In this document: piece after piece, positions 5,040 to 61,416 of the stretch
How the letters are laid out: each line of letters starts with the position of its first letter
Position numbering within the stretch: the stretch's first letter is position 1
Source of the DNA: Guillardia theta CCMP2712
Lineage: Eukaryota > Protista > Cryptophyta
Length of the DNA stretch: 64,000 bases
Reading direction: 5' to 3'
Assembly (NCBI RefSeq): GCF_000315625.1
Contig: NW_005434670.1
Coordinates: 1,211,966 to 1,275,965, forward strand
The notes under the pieces: model-generated
Databases searched by the model: none
The model's input: the letters and a program-made list of their open reading frames with translations, nothing else
Told to the model about the DNA's origin: nothing
Program-made: the position numbers and the translations under genes

Positions 5040-5601
5040 CGCTACTGCATCCTTCCAGAAAGTCTTCAGCTCCTTCAACAAAAAAACGCGAAAACAATAG
5101 AAATTTAGTGCATCAGTGCTATTGGATGTGGGTCAGGACAATAAAGTGTCTTATATAATGATTTTAATATGTAGTTTGCTATTTTTAAACGGAGGGGCAC
5201 GGATCATGTTCACCAGTCGCACCTCAATCCTGTTCCCGTTTCATCCCTCAGCTCTGTCCTCTCTTCTCTCGCTGCCTACCTGATCTCCTCGCTCCCCTGC
5301 TGTCCTTCGCTACCTTTGTCAGCTCGAGTTGTAGTAACAGCAGCATCTTGAGCAGTTGTGCCTTCATGGGCATCCATTTGGTGCTGTTCTATGTGACCCG
5401 ATTCTGATACCTTCACGTCTCACGTGCCTAGCAGAAAGATCAGCGCTTGATGCTCTTACTTGACCTGGTCGTGGTTCTGACTTGTGCCATCCAGGACCCT
5501 TCCACCATCTCCGCTGCATTCTCTCACGTTCGTATCCTGTACGAGAGTGGAAGTGATTAGCTAAGAAGGATCGATAGGGTAAGATCATTGAAGTAGCCAA
5601 C

Positions 5602-7912
5602 ATGGAGGCAGGACTCTCCTACCATCTAGTGCGACTGGTGCGCGCATACTGTGGAAGGAGAGGCCGTGAAGAGGCTCTTGCAGCTTGCAGTCAACACAAA
5701 GTGAAACCTCGCCCAGATCCTGTCATAGCAGCCTTCGGTTCAGAAACAAGCACAGACAGCGACTTGAAAGACCTTGGAGAGCACCGCATCAGCATCATTG
5801 AAAGTGGAGTTGCTGATGGAGTAAGGATCGTATTTGATAACCAGGAGGAGAACCTTTCGCAGATGGTTGATGCTTCTCTAAACGCAATTGGCTCAACTTG
5901 CTGTGACATGTAACTCAAACACCTCCAAGCTTTGCCTCTGTAACCGTGATTGACAGTGAAAAATTTCACATATCTACCCTTGCATTCCTCAGCGGATGTT
6001 TCTGGTCATCCTGGATGCTGAATCTTTCATCGATGGCCGAACGATCACTGATAGTGTTGAATCAAAGCTTTCACAGGTTCTTTGCTCGAACTTTTCAAAG
6101 GTTGTACTGACAACCGCCAAACTCGAAAGATCTCATTGGCGTCATGATAAATGGTTGGGTGCGAATCTTGGTGGATGGTTTCTGTTGGAGCCAGGACCAG
6201 GTTGAATTTGTTCGTTGTTGCTTCTGGTTGAGTCCTGCCGTCCAACAGCCTCGCCGTTGTTCGAAGACTGTCAAGAAATGTTGAAATCACGAGGAGAAGA
6301 AAAGGCTTCGTGTGGTTGTGAATGGTCCCTGTGTAGTTGTCTGGACAAGGTGGAGAAGGGTGTCAAATCTGAAGTGAGACCAGCGATCGATGTGTCTCTC
6401 CTTGATGGCATCGATGATTGCATAACATCTTGCACGTTTCAATGTCTGACCTGCCTGTCTGCTTCACATGTCATTCTTCGTCGCTGCCTCATTTTCTCTC
6501 ATGAATGTTTATTTTTTGCAGGTGCTTCGAAAGCACAGGAAAAATCATTTCGACGCATCCACGTTCAAGAAGATAGCAGACCATGGGCTGAATGCTGTCA
6601 GGATTCCCTTTGGCTACTGGATCGTTACGGGGCCTACGAATGCAGATGTCTACGATGGCCCGGCGTTAGATCAGCTTGACGAAGCCGTGAAAATGGCAAG
6701 AACGTGCAACCTTCAGGTATTTACAGATCGCAGGTTGCCATCTTGACGAAGGTGACCTCGATTAAGGTTGTGCTTGATCTTCATGGCAACCCTGGGGGAG
6801 AGAATGGACTTCGACCTTGTGGGCGAGAGAAACAAGATTGGACATGGAAAGAGTGGAGGCAAGAAGAGGCTCTGTAAGATTGATCTCAAGGAAGCTTGAG
6901 TTGACGACGGTCTGTCTTTGCTACAGGGAGTGTTTGCGACAAGTCGTTGTGAGATACAGGGGCTTTGATAACGTTACTGGAATTCAAGTGATTAATTTAT
7001 TGCTGCCTTACCTCGAATTTGACATTTGGAAAGGTCTGCAATGAGCCTTCGCCTGCTATTCCTTCTAACGTCTTGTGCGACTTCTATGAGGAGGTTGTTG
7101 GCTTCTAGGAGAGTAGAGATGTTCATCGTTGTCTGCAGTCAATTAGGGTTGTCCGTGAGGCTGGAATGTCTCCACATGATGTTTGCATCATTCTCCCCAT
7201 CTTTACTCAGTGGCGCATACGAGAAATTTCGAGGCTGTGGCTGGAACGTGGAAATATTCACAGATACGACAACGTTGCATGGGATATTCATTTTTATCAC
7301 GGTGAAATCAATCATTTCCTCCTCCCTCTTATCCATCGCAGATTTTCATTCTGCCTGGTCGCTGCTAAGCCACGAACAAGTAAGGGATTTCCGCTTTCAT
7401 TTTCAAGCTTTGACATGCTTTTTCTCCTGTGAACCTGTACCTCCCACCGTAATTTGCTTGCACCTTCTTGTATGAGCTCAGCATGTCGCAGTGCTGCAGG
7501 ATGAAGCAAGGGAGCTGACGCATCTTCATGCTGCGATGGTCGGAGAATGGTCAGCCTCGCGCCCAGGACCGTACCCGGAGGAGGAAGTCAAGGACTTTGT
7601 GATGCAGCAGGTTCTCGCGTATAATCACTCGTCGCACGGATGGTTTTTTTGGAATTGGCACGACTATTCCGTAACACATACCACTAACGTACGCTTGGTT
7701 AACTTTCAACACCAGTTTTATGACAAGTGGGATATGGAAAATGGCGTGATTGGCAACGGAAGATTGCCGAGATCTTTATCAGAACTGAAATCACAGTCTG
7801 CACAGCGTTTCTTGAGTCTTCAAGACTTGTGACTTATGACACAGATGCCTTGTTTCTGCATGGAGAGAGTCTCCCTTCAGCGTCCCAACTTCAGCTCCGT
7901 CGGTTTGTCTGA
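5602..7912 (+). CDS. Glycoside hydrolase family 5 (exo-1,3-beta-glucanase-like), multi-exon, with N-terminal extension
   Basis: Motifs GANLGGWFLLEP, GLNAVRIPFGYW, VVLDLHGNPG, NEP (acid/base), MVGEWS (nucleophile) and GWFFWNW. Both ends are approximate and the gene may start further upstream. Confidence 0.8.
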
Positions 7913-8486
7913 TTCGTGCTCCCTGAATCCTTTGTCTGACTCTCTCCACCTCCTTTGCCCAAGCACTTCTCCGTATTGTCTTCCATTTCTTCCACCTCCT
8001 TTCCCTTCTCATCTTTTGCTTTGTGTGCATGTGTTGACATGGTTCTTCGGCAGGGCAGTCTCGCCATGCTCGTCTCCTGGATTGGCCGATCTGTCGGAAA
8101 CCCTTTAGTTGCATTGTACGACGGAGGGTTTGCTGCATCCTTCCTGTCATGGCGATCGGCCTTCTCCTGAGAAACAGAGGGTTTGCAACCTGAGGCCCAA
8201 TAGAAACAACGTGATTGAATCGAAATAGTCCTTGAGTGACATTCCAGAGAACAGAGGAGAACGAGTTGCGACTCGATCTTGTCACTACCAGTTATCGCAC
8301 TCAGGTAAAAGCGCTCCGGCGCTCATGTTCAGCAGCATGTCATGCAACCCTGCTGATGTGAAGGAAGCAAGAAGCATACCCTATCATTTCAGTGATCTTC
8401 CCCTTCGGTTTCGCAAAAAAAATGCCTTTTGTAGTGGATGATTGTCCTCGTACGGACGATCAAGTTGTTGTTTGTCGCGTCAATCA

Positions 8487-8875
8487 TGATGTTGCACCCG
8501 CATGACGTTACGTCAGTAACGGACATGGCAGCATCATGCGAGTAGTCGCAAGAGGCTACGTACGCTGGCGAGGTGTATAATGCTAGAATCGAAGATGTGT
8601 ACTGGACGTAGACGTACGTACAACACATTGGTATGATGAAAGCATGAGGCTGGTATAAACCGATACACATGTTTACTCATTGCTGTATTACGGGTTAAGC
8701 CTGACCTCGACATATAAGCAACCCATCTTAGACGTTGGCCACGTCATCGGAATGGGATTGCACGAACATTGACGTGTGTTCTCTTACTGCTGTACATAAA
8801 CAAATCTAGCTTCATTGTTCATCTGTTCTACTCCTAAGTGCACTATCGCTCAGTTGCTGGACTATACCCGCATCA
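8487..8875 (+). repeat. 5' LTR of element A (389 bp)
   Basis: Matches 15895-16067 plus 25229-25444; terminal inverted repeat TGATG/CATCA. Confidence 0.96.
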
Positions 8876-8886
8876 GGTTATGAGCC
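8876..8886 (+). promoter_or_regulatory. Primer-binding site GGTTATGAGCC (internal tRNA-iMet, half-tRNA type)
   Basis: Directly abuts the LTR and is complementary to the tRNA-iMet anticodon arm GGCUCAUAACC, as in copia/Ty5. Contains the in-frame ATG at 8880. Confidence 0.88.
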
Positions 8887-11800
8887 TCGCGTTAAAGGAA
8901 CAGATGTCACCATACCGTCTACAATGGCCGCCAATCAATCAGCCTCAGGACTCGATGATTACAGCAGTAACACCCGAGAATATGCAAAGACTTGCCCCAG
9001 ATATCGAGAACTTTATACAGTTCGAGTTGATAGGGCAATACTATGCATACCTCAACTCTGAAGGGAATCCAGAAAACATGAGAGCCTACTTCGATTGTCA
9101 TTTTCCCATCAGAGATACTCAATCAGAAGAATTACAGGAAAACATGAGACAGAAAAGGAGAGAATTTGTACGAGAAGCAGATGCTGCTTTGACGCAAATC
9201 CTCCACACTGTTTACATGCAATGCCCTGGCAGGATTCAGATTCTGAAAGCCCACATGGAAGAAGAACACAAATCCCCCGAGACGCCTACAAAGCTTTGCT
9301 TAGCTGGGATCAAGGCATGGACAGACTTTAAAAGACTAGACAAGCCAACCGAAGCAACAAAAGCTGAACAGACCCTTGCCAATCTCAAAGAACTAGAGCA
9401 AGCAGTAATCTACAACGGAGACTACCAGAGTTACATCCCCAATGTGGTTAGGACCTTGAAGAAATTTGCTTCACAAGGCAAAGACTGCACTTTTATCTAC
9501 ACCCGTGCTTTCAAAGACGTTATCGACAACCTCAGAGCAATCGACGAAACGGGCGTTCAAGCAGAACTAGGTAGTTGGATAACATCTCAAATCCATCGCA
9601 ACGCAACGGAAGAAAATTTCTTCTACGAAGGAGAGCCACAGATTGAAGATTTTTTGAAATTCCATCAACATATGATGAACTTCACTACCAGAGGCACGAA
9701 ACACCCAATACCTATCCTTCAAGCAGGACAAGAAAGCTCTGGCAAGAAATCAACAGAAGCACATCATTCAGGTCAGAAACGAAAGGCGAACGCCGTGTTT
9801 TCAGCCTCCATCAAGCAAAACAATACACCACAGAAAATCAGGAGACAACAACAAGAAAACTTTACTGGATGCAAAATCTGCAAAGAAAAACGACTTCCAG
9901 CAAGGATTTCTCTCAGTCACGCTACCAGCGAGCATGACGCATCTAGGATCGGAGAAAGAGCCACTGGCAATAAAACAGCGCCAACCATGAAGAGGATCAC
10001 AGGAAGCATTTCAACCGGTTTTCAGACAAGGGCAGGAAGATCCGCAAAATTTACCGCCAAGAGTCATCGCTCGTCGAACCCAAACCGTTCAAACGAGGAG
10101 AGCGGACAATACCCGAAGTCAAAATACAAGCAAACAGTCAGCATCGACAAGAAGGTCCTCGTGAACCTCACAAAAGCGCTGCAAGAAGCCACCTCTACCG
10201 ACCAAACCGAAACCCAAGAATCCGTTCAAGAATCACCTAGCAGTGATGAAGACGAATCCGATGAACCGTCCTCATCTCGAACACCTCCGAAACGACTGAA
10301 AGAAGTCGTAAAAGAGACGTTCCGAGGCACACTAGGACGCAGTTCTAGAAAGAATAAATCTCCCAAGGAGTATCCCTGTTCTAAAAATTATGTTGTATAT
10401 CAAAGTGATACCAGGTCGAAAACTGACGAGATCCAACTGCACAAGCTTGATGCAGCTCTGTTCTCAAAAGTTTCAAAACCATGGTACCTTGAATACATCT
10501 TTCATATACCCAGACTACTGATCAGGAACACTGATCGGTATCAAGTTTTCCTACACGCGTTAAAAGCGAAAGAACAACAAGAGTCCCTGTACGCTATTGT
10601 CGACTCAGGTGCAACTGTAAGCGTACTCTGCAATCCAAGTTGGTTACAGAGATCGTTTACACACAAAACTGAGATCACCGGCGTGGGGGGCAGCAAGATC
10701 AATACATCGCTCGGAGGAATTCTAGCAGGAACGATAGCATCAATCGAAGGAAAACGTTTTGCATTTGCAACTATAGCAACAGTAATCAGCGACGAAAATG
10801 CTAAAATCAACCTGTTATCCATCTGGCGAATTACAAATAGTGGTCATACAATAATCCACAAAGGTAAACCAGAAGGAGGACTACACGGAATCATTACACT
10901 CAACAATGAATTTATACCTTTCTACTTCTGCCCAAGCACCTACCTATGGTACGTCGAAATTCAAAGACCAAACAGGAAGACCAATAAGATAATCTCCAAG
11001 CTATCAGCAAAAACCATCTGGGATAAAGACACAATTCTCAGAGAAATTCAAGAAGGCGAAATACCACTCACGGCAACAATCAAGGAGTCAACACAAACGA
11101 CAAATACACAAAGTACATCAAAACGCAGAATCCACCTGATCATCCATGGCGCAAGATTGGAGAGCGTACCTCGTTGGGGGGGAAGCATCCACATCTACCA
11201 AGCTGCGATGCAGGGGGAGAGCACAACTTCGGCAACAGCTTTCAAGCCCACGCACATGAAGACCTTTCCTATCAGCATGCGAGATGTACGACCTGAATTA
11301 GACACGTCAGAAGAGTCAGACAGTGAAAATGGAGAGACCTTGGACAGTTGCAGCAGCTCCGATGACGAGCTGATGACTACTGACAACACTCCATTAGAAC
11401 CTGCAAGACAATTCACGACGGAAGAGATTCAACAGCAAACCAAGGAGTATCTTAACGATCCAAGATCATTTACAGATTTTGACGACTTTACAAACACAAC
11501 GATCGAAGAACTTGACGAAAACGACAAGGAATACGAAGAACAATTGAAGAATGACAAATCAGATCTCAAGAATATTTACCTATATTCAACGGGAGAACGC
11601 ATCAAAGGAACAAGAGCATCAGCGATTCTGCTCAAGTGGCACGTAAGAACCAACCACATCGGCAAGAAATACCTTTTCCAACTGGCAGAAAACATCGAAG
11701 GCATGGAGGAATTGAAGAGAATCAATCCAAAAACACCCCTGCCGACATGTCACACATGCCGCAGAGCGAAAACCAAGGCAGCTCCATTACCAAAATTCAG

Positions 11801-14800
11801 ACACAAAAGATCCGATGTCAGATTTCACAGGCTGCATGGGGATATGAGCTCCTATCGAGTCCGCTCGATCGAAGGAGCAAAGTACCTCCAACTCTGGAAA
11901 GACGACTTCTCAGGATTCAAGATGCCTGTAGGTTTAGCGAGCAAGAAAGGTTACAGGAAATCGTTACGACTTGTTGTCACGAGATTCAACAATGGGGTCT
12001 ACCCCAAAGTGATTCGAGTTGACAATGGGAGCGAAATGGTTTCAAAGAAATCACTGAAGATGTACGAGAAGCACAACATCCACCTAGAAAGAAGCGCACC
12101 ATATGAGCATTGGCAAAATGGAAGAGCTGAATCTGGAATCTACTCGTTAGATACAAGGACTAGATTGGCAATCGTACACTCAAACGTTCCGAAAAATCTC
12201 TGGCTCAGCGCTATATATTACAACGCAGAGATCGAGAATGCATTCCTTCCTACCAGCAGAAACTCAAACATCAGTTGCTACCAAGCGTTTACAGGTACAT
12301 CACCAAACGCAGAACACTTCCATCCATTCGGTTGCCTCTGCTACGTTCATATCCTAAAGGACAGAAGATTAGATCAAAAGAAAGACAAAAAACTCGAGCC
12401 AACAGCAGAAGTTTGCGTGTTTCTTGGCTTCGCCCACCACCTAGGAATGAAAGGTTATTTGGCAGCAGCACTGAATGGGAAACAACTGTACGTCACACAG
12501 AACAATATAAGTTTCAACGAAGAAGTATTCCCCTACAGATTTTCTCACCCGGAGGACAGATCTTGGAAAATACCATACGGCGGAACTGATGATTTTGGCG
12601 ACGACAACGTCATTGTGCTCAAAAGAGCCGGTGAACGATTGATCGAAATGTCAGATACATCAGACGCATCAGATTCAGAATCTGAAGATGCCGGTGGAAA
12701 CTCCAGCGCCCAACCTGAAGAAAGAAATCGACGACCGTTTGCAGATCAACAACATGGCATAGCACACAATGATCCCATGGTGATCCAAGTGAGGCAACAA
12801 GCTATTGAAGTTGACAACCATCTCACGAGAACCTGTTCTGAGACATCAGTTGTAAGAGAGAGTGATATCACACAAGACGAACAAGTAGCGGTGGATCCAG
12901 GACTATCAGAAAGAGGGCACATGAACCGTGAACTAGCCAGTCTTCAAGTCGAAACCTACAACAGTGGTGAAAAGGATTTTGAGTGGGATAAACTCACCCA
13001 AATACCTGAACATCAACTGAGGTCAGGACGAATTGTACAGAAGACGAATGTGGACACACCGACAAGTGATTCAGACCACGAAGACAATGATCTTCCAGCA
13101 GGAATTGAAGAGTTCGACAATCAAGACTTCATCAATGCGACACTACTTCCCTTAACGAAGCGACAATACTGTGGAGTACTTGTCGACACATACAATAACC
13201 TGGAAGAGAAAATCATGACATGGTCACACGGGCCACCACAACGAAACATGTACAACGAAAATCATTACAACGAAGAAATCGACAGCTTGATGTCTTTTCT
13301 TCAAGGATGCAAGAAAGATGAAAGAAGAGAATCAAGGATACAAAAAGCTCAACTATTCTACACAGGCATGTTGTCGGCAACCAGCCATATCGCGTTTGAC
13401 AATGACGAACCAAGCATCAAAGAAGCTCTCAACAACAACAACCCAGAGAGACACCATTGGATAACAGCAATTCAGTCAGAGGCACGATCATGGAACGGAC
13501 TAAAAGTATTCGAAGAAGTCGACAACATCCCAGACGGAAGAAAGGCAATCGGATGCAGAATCATCCTTAAAAGGAAAAGAGGACCGAATGGAGAAGTATT
13601 GAAATACAAGGCAAGAGCGATCATACAAGGTTACAACGCGGTACAAGGGATCGATTACCTCGACTCCTTCTCAGCGACAGCGAACCCAGTTACGATCAGA
13701 CTCCTTCTGACAATCGCCAGAGCAAACAAATGGCACGTCAGATGTCAAGATATCTCAACTGCATACCTGATGGCACCACTTCCTACAGTTGTATATATCA
13801 GGACCCCAAAGGAATTTCAAGAGTTCTGCAACATTAGAGCAGCATACTTGAAGATCCTGAGTTCAGTCTATGGACTTCCTTCATCAGGTCGAAACTTCTG
13901 GAAGAAGCTCTGCCAAGACCTACGCGATTTCGGTTTCAAAGCCTGCACGTCAGATGATTGTTTGTTTCTATATCATGACGAGCAAGGGGAAGAGATCATC
14001 ATCGCATTAGTAGTCGACGACATCATCCAAGCTAGCAACAGCCAAGCACTATTTGCAAAGTTCGACGACTTCATGATGAACACAAAAGGATACAGCGTAA
14101 CAACTGACAACGATCTTAGCTTCTATCTGGGAGTCGCGTACAAGAGGGACGAAGCTGGAGACTTCATCAGCAACCAGCAAGCGTACATCGAAAAATGTTT
14201 GAAAAGATTCAACCTTGAGGGGATCGACCCTACAGGGAAATTCACCACGCCAATGGATCCCAAGTTCGTGATCGAACCAGAAGACGTTGATCCGCACGCG
14301 CCTGAAGACTTAGTCAAAATTTACAGAAGCCAAGTAGCAAGTCTGATATACATAGCAACATGGTCAAGACCAGAAATCAGCTATGCAGTATCATTGCTAT
14401 CAAGATATCTCACAAGTCCTACGAAGAAACTGTTAATGGCAGTGCACAGAGTATACGCTTATCTCAAGAACACCAAGACACTAGGAATCAGATACACCGA
14501 CAACGATGACAACGGACACAAGAAAATGGAACTAGTCGCATTCTGCGATAGCTCAGACGCCGATTGCAAGCTCACAAGCAGATCAACCGGTGGATACGTC
14601 ATTTTCCTCAATGGGACACCAATCTCATGGAAATCAGCAAGACACAACACAGTCTCACTGTCTACCATGGAAAGCGAATACATCCAAAGCACGCTTACAG
14701 CTATCGAGATTTTGTACTTGCGAGAGACGCTCGAGTTCATGGGATACAAGCAACCTACGACGATATGCTATCAAGACAACGCCGCCTGCATCAAGCTCAG

Positions 14801-15026
14801 CGAGAATCCCGTCAGCAAGAGCAGATCGAAACACATCAAGAGAAGACACCACTTCATACGACAATGCGTTGCCAACAAGGAGATCACCTTGGAAGCAATT
14901 CATACAAGCGAGCAAGTTGCTGATATATTCACAAAACCGCTGCCCGCTGATCAGTTTCTCTACCTAAGAGACCAATTGTTGAACCTCCCTGAAGCAATAC
15001 GCTATCAAAGGAAAACAAAAAAGTAA
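8880..15026 (+). CDS. Copia gag-pol polyprotein of element A (single intact ORF)
   Basis: Protease AIVDSGAT; integrase WHVRTNH..CHTC, LHGD..RVDNGSE..QNGRAE; RT KYKARAI..QDISTAYL..VYGLPSSGR..LVVDD; RNase H FCDSSDA..STMESEY..QDNAAC..SKHI..QVADIFTKPL. Confidence 0.96.
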   Translation: MSLALKEQMSPYRLQWPPINQPQDSMITAVTPENMQRLAPDIENFIQFELIGQYYAYLNSEGNPENMRAYFDCHFPIRDTQSEELQENMRQKRREFVREADAALTQILHTVYMQCPGRIQILKAHMEEEHKSPETPTKLCLAGIKAWTDFKRLDKPTEATKAEQTLANLKELEQAVIYNGDYQSYIPNVVRTLKKFASQGKDCTFIYTRAFKDVIDNLRAIDETGVQAELGSWITSQIHRNATEENFFYEGEPQIEDFLKFHQHMMNFTTRGTKHPIPILQAGQESSGKKSTEAHHSGQKRKANAVFSASIKQNNTPQKIRRQQQENFTGCKICKEKRLPARISLSHATSEHDASRIGERATGNKTAPTMKRITGSISTGFQTRAGRSAKFTAKSHRSSNPNRSNEESGQYPKSKYKQTVSIDKKVLVNLTKALQEATSTDQTETQESVQESPSSDEDESDEPSSSRTPPKRLKEVVKETFRGTLGRSSRKNKSPKEYPCSKNYVVYQSDTRSKTDEIQLHKLDAALFSKVSKPWYLEYIFHIPRLLIRNTDRYQVFLHALKAKEQQESLYAIVDSGATVSVLCNPSWLQRSFTHKTEITGVGGSKINTSLGGILAGTIASIEGKRFAFATIATVISDENAKINLLSIWRITNSGHTIIHKGKPEGGLHGIITLNNEFIPFYFCPSTYLWYVEIQRPNRKTNKIISKLSAKTIWDKDTILREIQEGEIPLTATIKESTQTTNTQSTSKRRIHLIIHGARLESVPRWGGSIHIYQAAMQGESTTSATAFKPTHMKTFPISMRDVRPELDTSEESDSENGETLDSCSSSDDELMTTDNTPLEPARQFTTEEIQQQTKEYLNDPRSFTDFDDFTNTTIEELDENDKEYEEQLKNDKSDLKNIYLYSTGERIKGTRASAILLKWHVRTNHIGKKYLFQLAENIEGMEELKRINPKTPLPTCHTCRRAKTKAAPLPKFRHKRSDVRFHRLHGDMSSYRVRSIEGAKYLQLWKDDFSGFKMPVGLASKKGYRKSLRLVVTRFNNGVYPKVIRVDNGSEMVSKKSLKMYEKHNIHLERSAPYEHWQNGRAESGIYSLDTRTRLAIVHSNVPKNLWLSAIYYNAEIENAFLPTSRNSNISCYQAFTGTSPNAEHFHPFGCLCYVHILKDRRLDQKKDKKLEPTAEVCVFLGFAHHLGMKGYLAAALNGKQLYVTQNNISFNEEVFPYRFSHPEDRSWKIPYGGTDDFGDDNVIVLKRAGERLIEMSDTSDASDSESEDAGGNSSAQPEERNRRPFADQQHGIAHNDPMVIQVRQQAIEVDNHLTRTCSETSVVRESDITQDEQVAVDPGLSERGHMNRELASLQVETYNSGEKDFEWDKLTQIPEHQLRSGRIVQKTNVDTPTSDSDHEDNDLPAGIEEFDNQDFINATLLPLTKRQYCGVLVDTYNNLEEKIMTWSHGPPQRNMYNENHYNEEIDSLMSFLQGCKKDERRESRIQKAQLFYTGMLSATSHIAFDNDEPSIKEALNNNNPERHHWITAIQSEARSWNGLKVFEEVDNIPDGRKAIGCRIILKRKRGPNGEVLKYKARAIIQGYNAVQGIDYLDSFSATANPVTIRLLLTIARANKWHVRCQDISTAYLMAPLPTVVYIRTPKEFQEFCNIRAAYLKILSSVYGLPSSGRNFWKKLCQDLRDFGFKACTSDDCLFLYHDEQGEEIIIALVVDDIIQASNSQALFAKFDDFMMNTKGYSVTTDNDLSFYLGVAYKRDEAGDFISNQQAYIEKCLKRFNLEGIDPTGKFTTPMDPKFVIEPEDVDPHAPEDLVKIYRSQVASLIYIATWSRPEISYAVSLLSRYLTSPTKKLLMAVHRVYAYLKNTKTLGIRYTDNDDNGHKKMELVAFCDSSDADCKLTSRSTGGYVIFLNGTPISWKSARHNTVSLSTMESEYIQSTLTAIEILYLRETLEFMGYKQPTTICYQDNAACIKLSENPVSKSRSKHIKRRHHFIRQCVANKEITLEAIHTSEQVADIFTKPLPADQFLYLRDQLLNLPEAIRYQRKTKK

Positions 15027-15894: not shown

Positions 15895-16067
15895 TGATGT
15901 TGCACCCGCATGACGTTACGTCAGTAACGGACATGGCAGCATCATGCGAGTAGTCGCAAGAGGCTACGTACGCTGGCGAGGTGTATAATGCTAGAATCGA
16001 AGATGTGTACTGGACGTAGACGTACGTACAACACATTGGTATGATGAAAGCATGAGGCTGGTATAAA
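15895..16067 (+). repeat. 3' LTR of element A, left part
   Basis: Identical by eye to the start of the 5' LTR, up to GGTATAAA. Confidence 0.95.
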
Positions 16068-16991
16068 TGTTGAAGCACCTGATAGGAGGAAGCTTCACCT
16101 CAGACAATGCCAAGTAATCGACGTGGCTCAAGTGCACAGATGCTTAGAGCCTCGGAATGCATCCCTGGAGAGGACAGCAACAGCTACAATAAGGACGACG
16201 TAGGAGAATCATGAAGAAGACAGCAAGAACTTAGGAATCGTGGATGGCAGCAGGAGATAAGCGAGCCAGCTTATATCAGTCCACGACAGGACAGCAGATG
16301 ACACGGTGGCAGGATATGGCTACACTCAAGGGGAGATTGGAAGTATCACCCCTGAAGTCATGGACATGGGAGAACAAGGGGTCTGATCAAAGAAGACAGT
16401 ACTATCATGATCATCTTAGCGGAGGACATACAAGGAATGCACGAGACCACCTCCAAGCATGCTCCTACGGAGACACAGGACCTGTCAAGGTCAAGGGAGC
16501 AGCTACATCAACTTCACAGAGAGCGTTGGATGAGAATCGAAGACCTCGTCATGTCAAGCCTATGACTCTTTCTCAGGGGACCCTCAAGGTACGGAACCAG
16601 GCCTCGGACCGGTCGAAGAATCATATCGCAGATAAGAAGCGTAGAGTACCGGTAGTGGTAGTTCCTAGGACCGGGCAGCCCCTATTTTAGGGACCGAGGA
16701 AGAGGAAGAAGGGCCGCACGCATTGGCAGGACAGGGAAAGGAGAACGAGGTGTACAGTCTCTGTGAGACTGGGTTGCTTGAAGTAAACAAGCTTGACCAT
16801 CTATACCAATCTCTTATCTCCTCCGTTTGTTCTCTGTATCCTGATATCATTCCTGCGTGGCCACCATTCGTGATATCTATTACCGCTGCTACAGAAACTT
16901 GCAGTCGGTGCTATCACTGTCTACTTCGGGTGTCACTGCTACTGTGACTGTGTCACCGTCTGTGGAGAGAAGGTTACTGGGAACTTCAACA
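16068..16991 (+). repeat. 5' LTR of element B (924 bp)
   Basis: Matches 24300-25223; the ORF-track translations inside the two copies are identical; 8-bp terminal inverted repeat. Confidence 0.96.
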
Positions 16992-17152
16992 TATTCTAAA
17001 AATTTTAGAATATCAGTGCCTAGATATTCTATTTCTCGAGAAACCTTGTATCACGGCAACCAGTGGACTCTTACTCTCACATTCGGAGTGACATCAGCGG
17101 GAGAGTATCTGTGGAGTGACAACGGTAGTAACAGCTGAGCCTGGAATCAAAC

Positions 17153-20083
17153 ATGGGCTCTGATATCAAAATGGCTATGGAAATTCATGAAGCGTTCTCA
17201 AAGACAAGCATTGACCTGACTAAGCTGAAGGATAATTCGGGCAACAATGTTTTTAAGACGGAGGAGGAAATGTGGGGTACGCTCAATCCGTTTTTCACAA
17301 CTCTCGAACGAGTCAGGCCAGGACTACGAGACGTGTTCATGAATATCTTGTCATTGTTCCCGATCACCGAAGAAGACAGTGTAAACTTGGGTTCCAGGCT
17401 GGAGAAGAGTCTTACGTCTTGGGAAGAGCATGTAGATTTCGATGATGACGAAGGAAAGTTTTACACGACAATCGAATGGAAAGGAATCGTCGTGGGAGTT
17501 TTTCTCAGGAAAAACTGGCCGTTCAAGTCCATCAAGCGAGTAGAGGCAACTGTAACCGATCTGAAGAGACGTTTCGACGAGTTCCAGGAGGAGTCACAGG
17601 AGCCTGAGGACCAAGAAAACTACCAGTGGTTAATCGATGCAGAAGTCACTGCTAGCGGGGAAAGCAGAAGGGCAAGACTGAGGCAGAGATTACCTTGGGA
17701 TTTGACAAATGATAAAACAGTACAGGGCATTGCGGCCCTATACAAAGACGTGATGGAGATTACGGAAGAAATCAATCAGTTCTTCAAAAATCGACTGACG
17801 GAGATCTTTCCTAGAGCATTACGACTGTCGGGGCAAGAAGATTATCCTCTGTCTGGATACCTCGGATTCTCTTATGTGAAATATTGGATATCACTTCAAT
17901 TCAGGAACCGTACAGCACCGAGAAATCTGATTGACCGCGTCAAGAGTCTAGTCTCGGAGGCTGAAGTTGATGACTTCGAGAAACTGCTTGACATCCCCCT
18001 AGAGGTTTGCTCCCTCCTCAAGCAGTTGAAAAGGAAAGAAGCAATCTCGACGGGTGGCACTCAAGAAGTTGTTGACTTGGAAAAGGAATTAGTGCGGAGT
18101 CTTCTGGGCAAATGTAAGACGTCGAAGATCGACGAAGTATCTTTCTTGGGGAGGATACAGGCTGCTGAGGGTAGATTGATAACCATGTCGGAAGTTCAGC
18201 GCAGAATTTCTAATATCTACGCCGAGCACAAGGCGCGAAGACAGTATGAAGGGCCTACACTGCGTCATCATAAGACAGCTAACTTGGGCCATGCTCAAAC
18301 AGGGGCCACCAAACATTCCGATCATCCATCGTCAGAGCCAGGATCAAGTGGTGCTCGACATGGCAGGAATAACGATGTACCGGGACGAGGATTCCAGCAT
18401 GGGAGACATCGTGGTTCGGACTCGCGCGGCGGAGGATGGCGTGACTCGCAGTCACTCCCGGATGGCAATCCGATCCGGTATGATCAGCAACAAGCCTCTG
18501 ATCATTCTCCCTGGCAGGCTCATGGTAACACTCATCGGCGAGGACAATGGCGAAATCCCTCACGCGGCAGATCGCAAGAACAGCAAGCGTTGCATACGCG
18601 AGAAGAAGGCAACGGCAGCTGCGAAGGAGCTCCATCATACAGGCAACACGATGGGAGAGGTCGCTTCAATCCAAGAGGGAAGGGAGCCAATCGTGGGGGA
18701 CGAGGGCGGATGCAACCAGGTCGCAGAGGACGACGAGAGCACTGGACGGGCCCTCTGATCCCGCACCGTGATGATCACCAGCCTCGGGTGCAATCTGACG
18801 AAGAGCAGGAGGACTCGGTTGTAGGACGAGCAGCAGGCGGCACTGCGGGCAGCTCGGGAGATTCGTGGCAAAGAAGGAGACAGAGGGGACACGGGCCTGG
18901 ACATGCGACTAGGGGCATGAGGCACGATCCCGGGACTCGTATGTATGAAAACAGTCGTGTTGCATTGCTGGAAGAAAAACTCGATATTTTGACAGACCGA
19001 CTGATGGAGAGACTTGCTCCTGATCATTCCAGCCGGACAGAAGTATCACGGAGGCAAGCCGCTCCTCATGCAAATGAGAGGAGGGTCCTGTACCTGACAG
19101 ATGGTCGATCGGCGGTGGACGATGTGGCCTTGATAGGTCAGGCACCAGCAACCTCGGATAGGAGAACAAGAAATGTGAGCCAGAGGCTTGGCGAACGAGA
19201 AGAAGTGGATTCTTGTCAGGAAGCCTCAGATACAGATAATCCATTTCAATCAGGTGACATTCATGTACGACGAGTTATGCGCAGGGTGCACGTCTGTCTT
19301 GATATCGAAAAATTGCTCAGAGCTAAGGCGTTCCTGAACGTACACTTACCGGGTTGTCACCATATGTTACTCGATACCGGAGCTAATATCAGTCTCTGCG
19401 GTGACAGATCTCTATTGACGAATGTGCGTAAAAGTCTACAAGCCACTGTTGTCAGCACAGCCAGCGGGGAGACATTTACGTGCGAGGAAGAAGGAGAAAT
19501 GAGAGTGCAATGTGCAATTACAAGCAATGGAAATGTTACTATCGCACATACATTCGTACTTACAGCAATGGTATGTGCAGAGACTCCGCTCACCATCTTT
19601 TCAATGAGTCAATTTCTTGGAGAAGAGACAACTGTGGAACTGTCTGGGAAGTCAACTGGATCTTGGGTTCGTATGCCAGATAACTTACTGTTACCTGTAC
19701 ACCTTTGGGAGGGAATCTATGTGCTTAAAGCAGCAGTTGATAAGTCTCGACACTCACTTGTCATCGCAGCACAGTCAAGCAGCCGTAATACTGAGGCAGC
19801 GGCCCTACTGACAAAGTGTGCAGCAGAGCCCTCCACTGCTGAAGAAGACAAGGTATCACTGAAATCCTTGAGCAACAAGGACATTCCAGCCTCCCCATTC
19901 AACCCAATTCCAACCATTCTGTGGCACTGGAGACTTGGGCTTGGCAAAAGGGAACAACAAAGTGACATACAGTCCAACCCATCGCACAGCAGGTCCTTGT
20001 CATGTTTGTCAAACCAGCAAATTCTCAAAGCTACCTATCAAAACCCAAGGCGGCTACCGACAAGAAAGAGCCGAAAGGATTAA
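17153..20083 (+). CDS. Element B gag + aspartic protease (ORF1)
   Basis: RGG/basic nucleocapsid-like region; protease MLLDTGANIS; start of integrase LWHWRLG before the frame changes at ~19935. Confidence 0.85.
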   Translation: MGSDIKMAMEIHEAFSKTSIDLTKLKDNSGNNVFKTEEEMWGTLNPFFTTLERVRPGLRDVFMNILSLFPITEEDSVNLGSRLEKSLTSWEEHVDFDDDEGKFYTTIEWKGIVVGVFLRKNWPFKSIKRVEATVTDLKRRFDEFQEESQEPEDQENYQWLIDAEVTASGESRRARLRQRLPWDLTNDKTVQGIAALYKDVMEITEEINQFFKNRLTEIFPRALRLSGQEDYPLSGYLGFSYVKYWISLQFRNRTAPRNLIDRVKSLVSEAEVDDFEKLLDIPLEVCSLLKQLKRKEAISTGGTQEVVDLEKELVRSLLGKCKTSKIDEVSFLGRIQAAEGRLITMSEVQRRISNIYAEHKARRQYEGPTLRHHKTANLGHAQTGATKHSDHPSSEPGSSGARHGRNNDVPGRGFQHGRHRGSDSRGGGWRDSQSLPDGNPIRYDQQQASDHSPWQAHGNTHRRGQWRNPSRGRSQEQQALHTREEGNGSCEGAPSYRQHDGRGRFNPRGKGANRGGRGRMQPGRRGRREHWTGPLIPHRDDHQPRVQSDEEQEDSVVGRAAGGTAGSSGDSWQRRRQRGHGPGHATRGMRHDPGTRMYENSRVALLEEKLDILTDRLMERLAPDHSSRTEVSRRQAAPHANERRVLYLTDGRSAVDDVALIGQAPATSDRRTRNVSQRLGEREEVDSCQEASDTDNPFQSGDIHVRRVMRRVHVCLDIEKLLRAKAFLNVHLPGCHHMLLDTGANISLCGDRSLLTNVRKSLQATVVSTASGETFTCEEEGEMRVQCAITSNGNVTIAHTFVLTAMVCAETPLTIFSMSQFLGEETTVELSGKSTGSWVRMPDNLLLPVHLWEGIYVLKAAVDKSRHSLVIAAQSSSRNTEAAALLTKCAAEPSTAEEDKVSLKSLSNKDIPASPFNPIPTILWHWRLGLGKREQQSDIQSNPSHSRSLSCLSNQQILKATYQNPRRLPTRKSRKD

Positions 20084-23000
20084 TAGCCAGTGGAATGTGG
20101 ATTTGAAAGACATGGGGACAGTCTCGGAGCCAGGAAGATTTCGTTACTTCTTGGTCGTGGTCGATGCCTACAGTGGATTTATTATAACGATTCCATTGAC
20201 GTCAAAAGGCGAAACTAAGGAAGTCATGCAGAGTTTGATCTTGCAGGAAGAACGCTCAGGTCGACCAGCAGTCATAACAGTAGTGAGTGACAACGGCTCG
20301 GAGTTTGCAAACCTCCAGTTGCAGTCATTCGTGAAGATGAAGGGGATCATCTGGAATTTTACCCCGGACTACACAAGTGCTGCCAACGGTCGAGCAGAGA
20401 GGGCGATCCGAACAGTGACTACCATCCATCGAGCAATCTCGTACCAAGCACAAGTCCCGCAGCGCTTCTGGCACTTCTCCGTCCAACAAGCAACGCTGAT
20501 CTTCAACAGTTTACCCAACCTGACGAATCGGGACGGCCTATCTCCCTGGCAACTTTATCAGGGACGAGAATTCGACTATGATAAACTGAAGGTGTTCGGA
20601 TGTACGGTATTTGTTGCCAACGAGGAGAAATTGAAGAATGATATGCCTGCTATTACTGCTGTTAACCTGGGAAATTCAGAGGCTCACATGGGTTACCAGC
20701 CAGGGTACTTGGTATTCAATCCAGCTACCAACAAGGTGATACATACGCGACAAGCAAGATTTGATGAGACCTTCTTTCATTTCAGAAGGACCAGTAGACT
20801 GCATCTACCCCCAGGACAGGAGTATGTTGGACTGCGCGAGGTGGATGAACATTGCTCAACTCAGAATGATCATGGAGCAACCAGCTCGGAAGCCTCGGAT
20901 GGCAGTATGGCAGAGTCCAGTGAAGACGATGGACACGATGCAGACTGGCAACCTGAACAGTCCGCAGATCAGAAGCAATCGATAACTGCTGGGGAACCTG
21001 TGCTGGGAAGCGAGGACGGCGAAGTCGGCAGAAAACGTACAAGAAGCGATTTTCGATCGGATCGAACCTTAATGGAACGGCAGTATGTCAACCGCAAAGT
21101 AACATATGGAACAAGGGCGGCGACGATAACGCAGATTGTGTTCAGAAACGGGGCATTTTACTTGAAAATCAAATATGACGATTCAGACAATGATTGGATT
21201 ATTGTTCCTACAACGGACCCGAAACTACGTCTGACATCTGAACGCGTGAATCTGGTCACAATGATCCGTTCTAGACGGTCAGGAAGCCAATCGACCTTAA
21301 CAGGAATGTTTAATCAATCCCGGACGGCAGAAGCGGCCTATTCCTTCTGTGCAAGGGGCATATCTCAGCCTGCCGAGGACGACAGTAACCAGACGAACGT
21401 CGGGCCGGAGCAAGCGTCTCACAGCAAAATGCTGATAGCCTACATGTGTAAATTCATGGATGTCTCAGAAGCTCAGGGAAATACAGTTCAATTATTGCAG
21501 ACAAGTGCGGCAGACAATTCGGCCAGCAGCAGGATCGACACTACCGGTAGAATCCAAGCTCCGAAGACCAGAAAGCAAATGTTGCTGAGCGCAGAAAGAC
21601 ACCAATGGTTGCAAGCTGAGCTTAAAGAACTCAACAGTATGAAGGAAAAGGGAGTGTGGGAAGAAGTGGATTATCCCAGCAACCGAAAGGCGAAGATCGC
21701 TCCATTCCAATGGGTGTATACTTTGAAATACAATACTGAAGGTGAGATTGCGAAATTTAAGGCGAGGTTGGTCATCCTGGGCAATCTAGTTCCCACTGAT
21801 GGTCCAGTATATGCTCCAACGTCAGATTTCCAGAACGTTAGGCTCATTTGTGCAATTGCCGCTGGAAACGCCTGGTTGTTGACGATGCGAGATATTTCGA
21901 CCGCGTTTTTGAATGCAGATATCGACGAGGAAATTTACATGTTACCTCCAGAACAGCTCGCCTTACCAAGGGGAAGACTACTTCGTCTGAAGAAGAGCCT
22001 GTATGGCCTGTCAACCAGCCCGCGGAGTTGGTTCAAATGTTTCACGAAGACTCTGAAGAAGATGGGATGTCGTCTAGTCGGCGTCGACGAGGTACTTTTT
22101 GTCTACGAGAATGCCAGTGGTCATCGAATCATTGGGACCATCTTCGTTGACGATATCTTGCTGGCTTCTCAGTCAGAAGCAATCTTGTCTGAATTCCTGC
22201 TCAAACTCTCTGACCATTTTGAATTTTCCGAGTCCCCTCAGGCGACTGGAACATTCCTGGGAGTCAAAATAACACAAGACTTGGCTCAAGGCACCGTCGA
22301 GCTCAACCAGACACATTTTATCCATCAGATTGTTGAGCGATTCGAAATACCTCAAAAGTCAGTGCGAAGCGTCTTACCACACGATTATGTCTCCTCCTAC
22401 CACCTAGAGGATGATCTGGTGTTGAATGAGAAGCAAATTCGACTGTACCAAGCTCTGCTAGGTTCACTTCTGTACCTCACCGCCGCGACCAGGCCAGATA
22501 TATGTTTTGCGGTCAGCCTGCTGAGCCGATTTGCCAAACGGCCTCGGATTAGCGACGTCAAGGCCGTAATCCATCTGACTCAATACGTTTATAACACTCG
22601 TGAACAGAGCTTAACGTTCTCCCAATCGGGTACATTCTTCAATCAACAGCATTATCACAACACTCTGATAGCTGCGAGTGATTCCACCTGGGGAACAGAT
22701 CCAATTACACGTCGTTCTCAAGGAGGGATTGTGATTTCTTTTAACGGAGGTCCAGTTAACTTCTCCAGCAAACTGCAGAAGGTCGTCAGCTTATCGAGTA
22801 CGGAAGCCGAGTTGTACAGTTGCTCCAACTGTGCGAAGGCGATACGGACGCTGCGATCCATCCTGCTCGAACTGGGGTTTGTACAGCGTGACCCAACAAT
22901 CATTCTCGTTGATAATGCAGCGGTCATCCATCTGCTGAGGGACCGTCGCGCATTTTCGAAGCTTAAGCATATTGCAATTCGACATCGGTTCACTCTTCAG

Positions 23001-23147
23001 ATGGTGGATGAAAACGAAATCATCGCTGTGAAGATTGCTACTACATACAACCCTGCGGACATTCTCACCAAGATCTGCCCAGTCTCCAAAATTCGTCAGC
23101 TAGCATCGTTCTTGTTCGGCAACGACATGTCTCAGGTCTCCGTTTGA
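19935..23147 (+). CDS. Element B integrase-RT-RNase H (ORF2, +1 frame relative to ORF1)
   Basis: CHVC, WNVDL, VSDNGSEF, ANGRAER; RT FKARLV..RDISTAFL..SLYGL..IFVDD; RNase H ASDSTW..SSTEAE..VDN..NPADILTK. Confidence 0.92.
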   Translation: MGLAKGNNKVTYSPTHRTAGPCHVCQTSKFSKLPIKTQGGYRQERAERINSQWNVDLKDMGTVSEPGRFRYFLVVVDAYSGFIITIPLTSKGETKEVMQSLILQEERSGRPAVITVVSDNGSEFANLQLQSFVKMKGIIWNFTPDYTSAANGRAERAIRTVTTIHRAISYQAQVPQRFWHFSVQQATLIFNSLPNLTNRDGLSPWQLYQGREFDYDKLKVFGCTVFVANEEKLKNDMPAITAVNLGNSEAHMGYQPGYLVFNPATNKVIHTRQARFDETFFHFRRTSRLHLPPGQEYVGLREVDEHCSTQNDHGATSSEASDGSMAESSEDDGHDADWQPEQSADQKQSITAGEPVLGSEDGEVGRKRTRSDFRSDRTLMERQYVNRKVTYGTRAATITQIVFRNGAFYLKIKYDDSDNDWIIVPTTDPKLRLTSERVNLVTMIRSRRSGSQSTLTGMFNQSRTAEAAYSFCARGISQPAEDDSNQTNVGPEQASHSKMLIAYMCKFMDVSEAQGNTVQLLQTSAADNSASSRIDTTGRIQAPKTRKQMLLSAERHQWLQAELKELNSMKEKGVWEEVDYPSNRKAKIAPFQWVYTLKYNTEGEIAKFKARLVILGNLVPTDGPVYAPTSDFQNVRLICAIAAGNAWLLTMRDISTAFLNADIDEEIYMLPPEQLALPRGRLLRLKKSLYGLSTSPRSWFKCFTKTLKKMGCRLVGVDEVLFVYENASGHRIIGTIFVDDILLASQSEAILSEFLLKLSDHFEFSESPQATGTFLGVKITQDLAQGTVELNQTHFIHQIVERFEIPQKSVRSVLPHDYVSSYHLEDDLVLNEKQIRLYQALLGSLLYLTAATRPDICFAVSLLSRFAKRPRISDVKAVIHLTQYVYNTREQSLTFSQSGTFFNQQHYHNTLIAASDSTWGTDPITRRSQGGIVISFNGGPVNFSSKLQKVVSLSSTEAELYSCSNCAKAIRTLRSILLELGFVQRDPTIILVDNAAVIHLLRDRRAFSKLKHIAIRHRFTLQMVDENEIIAVKIATTYNPADILTKICPVSKIRQLASFLFGNDMSQVSV

Positions 23148-24299
23148 CCATCATTACGCCGCTGCTTCATGCAAGACCTTGTCAAGCTAGCCAAGCTCCC
23201 TGTACCTCGTCAGGGAGGGAGATGGATGATGCGAAGTCACAGGGGACCCACTTCAGCCTGAGGTCATCTGTTCGACACCAGAGACAGTCAGGGAGGGGTT
23301 CACTAAATGAACAATCAAAATCAGGGAATATCATATCTTTTCACTATCATACCTGAATACTGAACTTCATGACAGGCTGAACCTCTGAGAACATCTGATG
23401 ATGACATCAGCATCGAGCCTCGCATCATACCTATGTCATGTGACATGGACGAGTCACAGGGATCCCCCAAGCAGAGCCAAGAGTCGCACAAGATGACGAC
23501 GAGGCCACCAGATAGCTCTCCCACCATGATGATGAGTGTGGCAAAGAAGCTGAGGGGTGACATGACAGCGAGAAAATCTCGATGATGGAGGGATCAGTCC
23601 TGATCAAAGTCGCTCTGAATGTCAAAAGTGACAAGAGCTGTTTTCAATCCAACCTGGCAAAGCCTGTACGTGGCCAACCAGTGAGGAGAGGAATTACCTC
23701 ATGATTCCACTGGTCAAGCACCGCGATGATTGAAGCGGCAAGCCTAGAGCACGGCAGATGAAAGCTTGAAGGTTGTGAAGATCGAGGAAGGGAGACGTCC
23801 CATTGAAGCCTCATTGCATGCCACGATCTCACGATGGCGATATGATCTCACGAAGCAACTCTACAGCAGAGTTGAAGAAATGAAAGGCAGCTTGAAGCGC
23901 CAAGCCTTCGCAAGACGAAGAAGCAGACGATGAAGACATACCTTCGATCGAAGTTATGAAATGATGCTGCAGAAATGAAGGAGGTTCTAAGTCGCCAGGC
24001 ACATCAGTGCTGATGGGCGCTGAGGAGAACCTTTCAGTACCATGCACAGCCCTACTGCGAAAGTCAAGTCAAGAGGCTGATCGCTTATGGAAAGAGGAAT
24101 ATCAAGTCTGATGAGCAACCATACAGCTTCAAGGCAGACGACCAGAGACCAAGCATGAGTCCACCTTGCTGTCAAGCAACAGCTCCCGCCTACTCTAGGC
24201 AAGGGAGGAAATACTGCGGCGACGACGCGCGAAGAGTCAACCGCAGCAGGCGCGGCAAAGCAACAATGCTGGCATCGGCACACAAGAGCCAAGGGAGGG

Positions 24300-25223
24300 T
24301 GTTGAAGCACCTGATAGGAGGAAGCTTCACCTCAGACAATGCCAAGTAATCGACGTGGCTCAAGTGCACAGATGCTTAGAGCCTCGGAATGCATCCCTGG
24401 AGAGGACAGCAACAGCTACAATAAGGACGACGTAGGAGAATCATGAAGAAGACAGCAAGAACTTAGGAATCGTGGATGGCAGCAGGAGATAAGCGAGCCA
24501 GCTTATATCAGTCCACGACAGGACAGCAGATGACACGGTGGCAGGATATGGCTACACTCAAGGGGAGATTGGAAGTATCACCCCTGAAGTCATGGACATG
24601 GGAGAACAAGGGGTCTGATCAAAGAAGACAGTACTATCATGATCATCTTAGCGGAGGACATACAAGGAATGCACGAGACCACCTCCAAGCATGCTCCTAC
24701 GGAGACACAGGACCTGTCAAGGTCAAGGGAGCAGCTACATCAACTTCACAGAGAGCGTTGGATGAGAATCGAAGACCTCGTCATGTCAAGCCTATGACTC
24801 TTTCTCAGGGGACCCTCAAGGTACGGAACCAGGCCTCGGACCGGTCGAAGAATCATATCGCAGATAAGAAGCGTAGAGTACCGGTAGTGGTAGTTCCTAG
24901 GACCGGGCAGCCCCTATTTTAGGGACCGAGGAAGAGGAAGAAGGGCCGCACGCATTGGCAGGACAGGGAAAGGAGAACGAGGTGTACAGTCTCTGTGAGA
25001 CTGGGTTGCTTGAAGTAAACAAGCTTGACCATCTATACCAATCTCTTATCTCCTCCGTTTGTTCTCTGTATCCTGATATCATTCCTGCGTGGCCACCATT
25101 CGTGATATCTATTACCGCTGCTACAGAAACTTGCAGTCGGTGCTATCACTGTCTACTTCGGGTGTCACTGCTACTGTGACTGTGTCACCGTCTGTGGAGA
25201 GAAGGTTACTGGGAACTTCAACA
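24300..25223 (+). repeat. 3' LTR of element B (924 bp)
   Basis: Direct repeat of 16068-16991, preceded by the PPT. Confidence 0.96.
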
Positions 25224-25228
25224 ATAAA

Positions 25229-60958: not shown

Positions 60959-61037
60959 GCAGAAGTAGAGAGTAGAAAGACGCCTCAGAAGCAGGGTTCG
61001 CATTGTAGGCCGTGTACTCCCAGTGCTCGAGCGCCTC
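60959..61037 (+). repeat. 79-bp direct repeat, copy 1
   Basis: GCAGAAGTAGAGAG...GAGCGCCTC, identical to 63816-63894. Confidence 0.95.
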
Positions 61038-61397
61038 GGCAGGCGCCGTTATTTTCGGCAGGCGCCGTTATTTTCGGCAGGCGCCGTTATTTTCGGCAGG
61101 CGCCGTTATTTTCGGCAGGCGCCGTTATTTTCGGCAGGCGCCGTTATTTTCGGCAGGCGCCGTTATTTTCGGCAGGCGCCGTTATTTTCGGCAGGCGCCG
61201 TTATTTTCGGCAGGCGCCGTTATTTTCGGCAGGCGCCGTTATTTTCGGCAGGCGCCGTTATTTTCGGCAGGCGCCGTTATTTTCGGCAGGCGCCGTTATT
61301 TTCGGCAGGCGCCGTTATTTTCGGCAGCATGGCTCCTCGTCAGGTGTAGGGGAATTTTCGGCAGGCGCCGTTATTTTCGGCAGGCGCCGTTATTTTC
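61038..61397. repeat. 19-bp minisatellite GGCAGGCGCCGTTATTTTC (15 + 2 copies)
   Basis: 15 perfect copies at 61038-61322, an interruption, then 2 more copies. Confidence 0.96.
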
Positions 61398-61416
61398 GGC
61401 AAATAGCTTTCTAAGT

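Follow-up and report, generated by a model that had tools for sequence, protein, structure and literature searches.

A perfect palindrome at the primer-binding position of a copia retrotransposon clade in Guillardia theta, and its possible use in self-priming

Element B is a copia retrotransposon of the cryptophyte alga Guillardia theta that carries, at the position where a primer-binding site (PBS) would be expected, a perfect palindrome beginning on the last base of its 5′ LTR. We identified it in a 64-kb stretch of genomic DNA (64,000 nucleotides, referred to below as the window), and we found that the palindrome is conserved among the copies of the element, that its arms covary among related families, and that no tRNA-type PBS is present beside it. 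On balance, we lean toward the reading that the palindrome is the primer-binding site of element B and that the primer is the element's own RNA.

Element B is inserted in the 3′ LTR of a second element, element A, and the two make up a nested copia pair. The intact 5′ LTR of element A lies at 8487-8875, and in it the empty insertion site appears as a 5-nt overlap (8655-8659) between repeat families D3 and D4. The ATAAA duplication, the identical LTR pair and the intact LTR of element A together place the edge of the element B LTR at 16991. The features of the element are as follows.

16063..16067 (5′ copy) and 25224-25228 (3′ copy), plus strand: target-site duplication ATAAA, read against the intact LTR of element A
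16068..16991, plus strand: 5′ LTR, 924 bp, TGTTGAAG...CTTCAACA, delimited by the identical LTR pair and the flanking duplication
16681..16693, plus strand: TATA-like CCCTATTTTAGGG, present in the sequence, with a putative promoter role
17153..20083, plus strand: ORF1, with a Gag-like region, an Arg/Gly-rich tract and a protease (DTGA)
19935..23147, plus strand: ORF2, with an integrase and then an RVT_2 reverse transcriptase and RNase H, in copia gene order
24284..24299, plus strand: polypurine tract AAGAGCCAAGGGAGGG, directly 5′ of the 3′ LTR
24300..25223, plus strand: 3′ LTR, matching the 5′ LTR at 924/924 positions

Judged by its PR-IN-RT/RH order, its RVT_2-type reverse transcriptase, its LTRs and its 5-bp duplication, element B is a Ty1/copia LTR retrotransposon. 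Pfam placed rve (aa 48-146 of ORF2) before RVT_2 (aa 574-807), and the only domains seen in the element were a protease barrel, the integrase, SH3 and RVT_2. A look-up in the ESM Atlas returned generic RVT_2 clusters only, and the motifs KARLVI, FVDD, TRPDI and ADILTK are likewise generic for copia. ORF2 is out of frame with respect to ORF1 because 26 nt that are present in the relative L106 are missing near 19940-19941, in the integrase N-terminal region; in another copy of the element, C251, one frame stays open over 2015 aa. The junction of GGGAGGG with TGT, at which the polypurine tract meets the 3′ LTR, is common to element B and to the two related families described below, family 2 and family 3.

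Transcription of the element was followed in RNA run X22, the only run mapped from raw reads. Read depth peaked at 16724-16807 and the 5′ ends clustered loosely at 16725-16740, that is, about 35-55 nt 3′ of the TATA-like CCCTATTTTAGGG, and the R region of element B probably starts at about 16725-16740. The leader that bears the palindrome is transcribed, at a raw-read depth of at most 2 beyond 16976 and of zero after 17060 in this one run. In the contig-kept runs X1 and X5, pieces of U3 at 16294-16417 showed a word depth of 5,000-15,000 versus approximately 240-625 for the body of the element, for which abundant U3-derived RNA or other copies are possible explanations.

The palindrome itself occupies 16991-17013 and reads ATATTCTAAAA-A-TTTTAGAATAT, with perfectly complementary arms of 11 nt on either side of one centre base, and A16991 is the final base of the 5′ LTR. 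The initial annotation of this DNA had described a perfect 11-bp inverted repeat ending at the last LTR base, with neither a TGG-type nor a GGTTATG-type PBS after it, and the sequence bears out both statements. No other perfect palindrome with arms of at least 9 nt and a loop of 0 or 1 is present in the window, and first-order Markov shuffles of the window contained 0.7 palindromes with arms of at least 9 nt and 0.0 with arms of at least 11 nt. The segments of the leader are listed here in order.

16991..17001, plus strand: left arm (L), occupying the PBS position, its first base being the last base of the LTR
17002, plus strand: unpaired centre base, A in this copy
17003..17013, plus strand: right arm (R), whose pairing is seen in the sequence; the putative primer, with its 3′ end at 17012 or 17013
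17014..17022, plus strand: variable loop of an alternative hairpin, holding the tail of TATCAGTGCC; it differs in L105, a metagenomic relative of element B
17023..17031, plus strand: L′ (GATATTCTA), which repeats left-arm sequence further downstream and pairs with 17006-17014
17032..17043, plus strand: second perfect palindrome, TTTCTCGAGAAA, 12 nt, kept in L105; possibly a dimerisation site

In element B the pairing of R with L′ extends over 9 bp, one pair past the palindrome, and encloses an 8-nt loop. ViennaRNA assigned -5.6 kcal/mol to the palindrome hairpin and -18.8 to the homodimer, versus 2 x -5.6 for two hairpins, and, for 16980-17050, placed the local minimum at the R:L′ hairpin. According to these models, the RNA of element B can switch between two near-isoenergetic states, which would hide or expose the left arm.

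The sequence that follows the LTR, TATTCTAAAAATT, contains no classical PBS, defined as TGG plus at least 8 nt of complement to a tRNA 3′ end at 0-5 nt from the LTR, and no half-tRNA(iMet) PBS of the GGTTATG type abuts the LTR in element B, family 2 or family 3. The host iMet tRNA, which we located through its T-loop, ends in ...AACCAACCTTCGCTA, and the corresponding PBS would read TGGTAGCGAAGG. Element A served as the positive control, with the following site.

8876..8890, plus strand: PBS of element A, GGTTATGAGCCTCGC, complementary over all of its 15 nt to positions 25-39 of the host iMet tRNA

This site adjoins the LTR end at 8875, matches the iMet tRNA at 15/15 positions and has the sequence and placement of the classical copia/Ty5 half-tRNA arrangement. 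The 15-nt match indicates that the method detects a real PBS in G. theta and that the LTR edge marks the priming point. To judge from their leaders, the neighbouring copia elements A and B use different initiation strategies. No gene carrying the canonical iMet arm GGGCCCATAACCC was found in the assembly, where the matches to it belong to the PBSs of other repeats. One repeat, present in at least 25 copies (e.g., C4:891379 and C116:36423; L096, L097), carries an iMet-half-type PBS, GGTTATGGGCCCC, which agrees with the host iMet anticodon arm (GGTTATGAGCCTC) at all but two positions.

We then compared the leaders with the tRNAs of the host. Within 3 nt of the LTR edge of element B, family 2 or family 3, none of 19 distinct tRNA sequences (12 isoacceptor types) had a complement of at least 6 nt, and whole-genome scans for an anchored PBS complement together with a T-loop gave, for the same three families, counts no higher than those of the reversed-pattern control. 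The 12-nt complement of the element B PBS was found in the element copies and at 14 scattered single sites, versus 11 for the control, and at no multi-copy locus. One tRNA-like 12-mer match, at C92, has no T stem and was rejected by ARAGORN. This partial search, made up of the 12 isoacceptor types and the pattern scans of the nuclear assembly, to which organellar and nucleomorph RNAs do not belong, yielded no complementary host tRNA or tRNA fragment. The initial annotation had also proposed that a degenerate iMet-like stretch after the palindrome was a relic PBS, and this proposal we could not support. TATCAGTGCC (17010-17019) has no similarity to the 3′ end of the host iMet tRNA; exact matches to the candidate TATCAGTGCCTAG are confined to the 8 element copies, and none of the near matches is a tRNA; and comparison with L105 shows the stretch to be a variable loop between two conserved pairing segments.

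Besides the palindrome and L′, a scan of element B for complements of at least 8 nt to 16986-17045 returned nothing. This result weighs heavily against a self-priming mechanism of the Tf1 kind, in which the PBS pairs with the transcript's own initial bases. Such a mechanism is the only mode of self-priming proven by experiment, and it is also predicted for a copia lineage of plants, TAR (PMC6317226), a prediction that leaves incomplete the earlier statement that self-priming is a feature of the Tf1/sushi gypsy group. In element B, however, no such complement exists elsewhere in the LTR or the element, and the RNA 5′ ends at about 16725-16740 fall in unrelated sequence without complementarity to the PBS, which makes a Tf1-style start very improbable.

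Across the genome (87 Mb, 669 contigs), the palindrome is present at exactly 8 sites, every one of them a copy of element B with a 5′ LTR junction. None of these sister copies has an ordinary PBS. The arms are invariant in 8/8 copies and only the centre base varies, being A in six and T in two; the centre T was recorded in three copies, L004, L005 and L018, the last of which is truncated. Breaks of Logan contigs at 17003 had been considered as RNA ends, a reading that was rejected as they fit the A/T variant at 17002. The metagenomic relative L105 (approximately 83-85% nucleotide identity) lacks the centre base, which results in a 22-nt perfect palindrome. It retains both arms, L′ and the second palindrome, and the leader that follows is almost unchanged; divergence is seen over the final 70 nt of the LTR and over the 9-10 nt that follow the palindrome. 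L105 and L107, a relative of family 2 (87% amino acid identity), both come from ENA sample ERZ930071, so a second, related cryptophyte houses both palindrome families.

Several observations were made on rearranged copies and on the flanks of the LTRs. At C44:237526-239787 (L008, L009) there is a rearranged copy of element B whose internal region begins at the palindrome, with unrelated sequence before it; about 2 kb downstream, the LTR end is followed only by TATTC and then by GC-rich sequence, the break falling within the left arm. Many flanks of B-family LTRs (examined in L009, L019, L021, L025, L028 and L018) adjoin GC-rich micro-palindromes of the GGACCGTC/GACGGTCC type. In L018 a tandem repeat with a unit of approximately GGACTCGCTTAGCTGACCCC begins 13 nt past the LTR, within the palindrome. 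The window also contains, at 60979-61403, a tandem array of a 19-nt unit in about 16 or more copies.

Further copia families of G. theta were found by a search with the reverse transcriptase of element B. Family 2 (48% RT identity to element B) and family 3 (44-45%) have 12 and 13 copies with intact arms, respectively, according to genome-wide pattern searches in which a control pattern gave 0-1 matches. A full copy of family 2 (L101+L102) has 490-bp LTRs, the duplication GTTAA and the palindrome CAAAAAGAAAA/TTTTCTTTTTG directly after the LTR, which reaches 28-30 nt when the last 3-4 bases of the LTR are counted. Family 3 has 428-bp LTRs, the duplication CTCCC and the palindrome CAAAGAGAAAA/TTTTCTCTTTG in the same place. 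The palindrome is retained in L107, the metagenomic relative of family 2 (87% protein identity), and is degenerate in the family 2-like copy C137. It overlaps the LTR by 1 nt in element B and family 3 and by 3-4 nt in family 2, so the exact point of priming would not be uniform among the families. In a tree of RT/RNase H sequences, a clade with an SH-aLRT of 100 unites element B, family 2 and a G. theta protein that shares 46-49% identity with each of them. The palindrome clade sits on a long stem in this quick tree, with element A and 30 other copia sequences outside it, and more distant copia families of G. theta (C46/C97) show 36% RT identity. By these sequence comparisons, B, 2 and 3 constitute one well-supported clade.

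The palindromes of these families differ in sequence and remain paired. Family 2 and family 3 are distinguished by one change from A:T to G:C that is compensated on the opposite arm, and all six arm positions at which element B differs from both families are compensated (6/6), so the covariation that the initial annotation had suggested looking for among relatives is complete. In a formal count made on four even-length palindromes, which represent three independent lineages only, 6/12 pairs had changed on both sides and none on one side alone, and 97.9% of cells were paired; the count was reached by 0/500 shuffles, and slid controls gave far lower values. The core AAAATTTT is invariant across all families. 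L′ is present in every family as a copy of the outer left arm and pairs with the right arm and with 1-2 further bases, forming 11-13 bp with a loop of 14-25 nt in family 2 and 10 bp with a loop of 60 nt in family 3. It covaries with the arms and occurs twice in L107. Covariation of this kind is what self-pairing predicts, and a primer shared from the host does not predict it.

These data have to be weighed against the possibility that a host RNA, either a tRNA fragment or a small RNA, pairs with the left arm, and that the right arm and L′ mask and expose this site or serve dimerisation or packaging, like the retroviral DIS or the PAL sequences of Ty1. The neighbouring element A primes with a half-tRNA, the comparison with host tRNAs covered 12 isoacceptor types plus pattern scans, and palindromes in 5′ leaders are classic dimerisation sites (PMC5445492, PMC6844567). 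Against it, the three left arms would need three host RNAs, two of them differing by one base that is tracked by the right arm; since each left arm has its own matching right arm, one host RNA would not suffice, an argument that is stronger than the tRNA search. Moreover, no multi-copy locus carries the 12-nt complement, the tRNA-like match is not a tRNA, the anchored-complement scans were at or below control, and a perfect palindrome of 22-30 nt is not tRNA-like. We therefore regard a host primer as unlikely, while granting it an appreciable chance.

A site acting at the DNA level, where a dimeric protein of the element or of the host would bind beside the LTR end for reasons unrelated to priming, could also account for the symmetry. 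The invariance of the AAAATTTT core in all families and the symmetric changes of the half-sites fit binding of a homodimer, for which L′ could be a third half-site. This reading nevertheless leaves the element with no primer site, though the families are young and multi-copy, and the extra R:L′ base pairs past the palindrome, which were found in three families, fit RNA pairing and not identity of half-sites. We consider a protein-binding site improbable as the explanation.

Returning to the palindrome as the primer-binding site of a self-primed element, the position of the LTR edge constrains where synthesis begins. The U5 end of LTR elements is set by the first deoxynucleotide joined to the primer, and RNase H leaves one ribonucleotide in the case of the HIV-1 tRNA primer. 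This requires the 3′ end of the primer to pair at 16992, or at 16991 should one ribonucleotide stay, and the right arm is favoured as the primer because it is the only sequence that pairs at these positions. In the mechanism we propose, the genomic RNA of element B would start at about 16725-16740 and would be cut 3′ of the right arm, after 17012 or 17013, to give a primer ending in ...UUUUAGAAUA(U). Held against the left arm, either within one folded RNA or, as would work better, within a 23-bp duplex formed with a second packaged RNA, the 3′-OH of the right arm would prime minus-strand strong-stop DNA across U5-R. A second RNA would be needed because an RNA that primed on itself by fold-back would be cut in two, and its minus strand would be left without the palindrome. 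The RNA primer would later be copied into plus-strand strong-stop DNA, and this copy would restore the palindrome needed for the second strand transfer, a part played in ordinary elements by the copied tRNA. The A/T variation at 17002 would fit such copying of a palindromic RNA primer, in which the complement of the centre base enters the plus strand. By competing for the right arm, L′ (17023-17031) could gate either the exposure of the left arm or the availability of the right arm, and the RNase H of the element may be the cutting nuclease, by analogy with Tf1 only. The cut in the RNA, the choice between pairing in cis and in trans and the role of L′ are thus steps that we infer.

The same arrangement could be read without any RNA primer, as a de novo or protein-primed start resembling that directed by hepadnavirus epsilon, with the hairpin as the signal and L and L′ as the donor and acceptor repeats. 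The left-arm sequence does occur twice (L and L′) around a structure, which loosely recalls epsilon and DR1, and no primer was found by the searches described above. On the other hand, the Pfam matches include no domain that resembles a terminal protein, nothing in the data points specifically to such initiation, and we know of no LTR retrotransposon with de novo or protein-primed initiation. The probability that we assign to this reading is accordingly small.

The closest known parallel to the leader of element B is found in the fungal GalEa copia elements, which have no PBS and carry instead a 9-nt sequence that is palindromic with the final A of the LTR and whose inverse complement follows 12-41 nt later (Donnart et al., 2017, BMC Genomics 18:410, PMC5445492). 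Its authors named this layout the Conserved Hairpin Site, ruled out a complement of the Tf1 kind and did not assign a mechanism (PMC5445492). A palindrome at the PBS position had thus already been published for copia elements. Both groups are copia, lack a tRNA PBS and have, abutting the LTR, a sequence that is palindromic with the final A of the LTR, as we found in element B, family 2, family 3, L105 and L107. In both, an inverse-complement segment downstream makes a hairpin possible at the PBS position; in the G. theta clade this segment is L′, and its spacing of 60 nt in family 3 lies outside the published 12-41 nt. They also share 5-bp duplications, LTR ends of the form TGT...(C/T)A and the lack of a complement in U5 or at the 5′ end. 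They differ in that the palindrome measures 10 nt in GalEa versus 22-30 nt in the G. theta clade, that CHSeq1 (CTGATCAGT/CTAATTAGT) is unrelated to the G. theta palindromes, and that a strict A/A mismatch is present in GalEa whereas the R:L′ pairing is perfect in the G. theta clade. Furthermore, the downstream segment of G. theta copies the outer part of one arm only, and the host is a cryptophyte alga. On sequence grounds, then, the G. theta clade has a layout of the GalEa kind with an unrelated and much longer palindrome.

Other systems resemble element B in part. Tf1/sushi elements (Ty3/gypsy) and the plant TAR elements (Houba, Osr-1; PMC6317226) use no tRNA; in the schemes proposed for them, an RNA:RNA duplex at the PBS is cut internally so that the element's own RNA can act as the primer. 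In Tf1, however, priming relies on the first 11 nt of the transcript and on a PBS that is not palindromic, whereas element B has no 5′-end complementarity and its complement lies immediately 3′ of the site. The half-tRNA(iMet) elements (copia, Ty5 and Osser), to which element A belongs, are of the same superfamily and have a PBS that abuts the LTR without TGG, but no complement of the iMet anticodon arm, or of any other tRNA in the sample, was found in element B, family 2 or family 3. The retroviral DIS and Ty1 PAL (PMC6844567) are also self-complementary sequences of the 5′ leader that form an intermolecular duplex, and the homodimer of element B is predicted to be stable. In those systems the palindrome is additional to a tRNA PBS and usually lies in a loop, whereas that of element B forms a stem at the PBS position, so 16991-17013 is not a loop palindrome beside a PBS; the second palindrome at 17032-17043 might play the DIS role. 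As for the self-priming reading of the initial annotation, it withstood the comparison with sister copies and the partial comparison with host tRNAs and gained the covariation, and it lost the relic PBS.

In textbook schemes, an LTR retroelement begins replication with a tRNA as primer or, in Tf1, with the 5′ end of its own transcript. Tentatively, and with the caution that a doubtful proposal deserves, we suggest that the leaders described here may represent a third mode of starting, in which one packaged RNA would be cut at the palindromic PBS and given up so that it could prime the other, with the downstream repeat as a switch, and which would have evolved or been retained independently in the cryptophyte clade and in GalEa. 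The one earlier report of a palindrome at the position of the PBS concerns GalEa and gives no mechanism; the arrangement is now found in an unrelated host. The G. theta case adds longer palindromes, complete covariation over three families and young, transcribed members. As these members reside in a culturable alga with a sequenced genome, the question of priming is directly testable. For genome annotation, LTR-element finders that rely on the PBS will miss or mis-score families of this kind.
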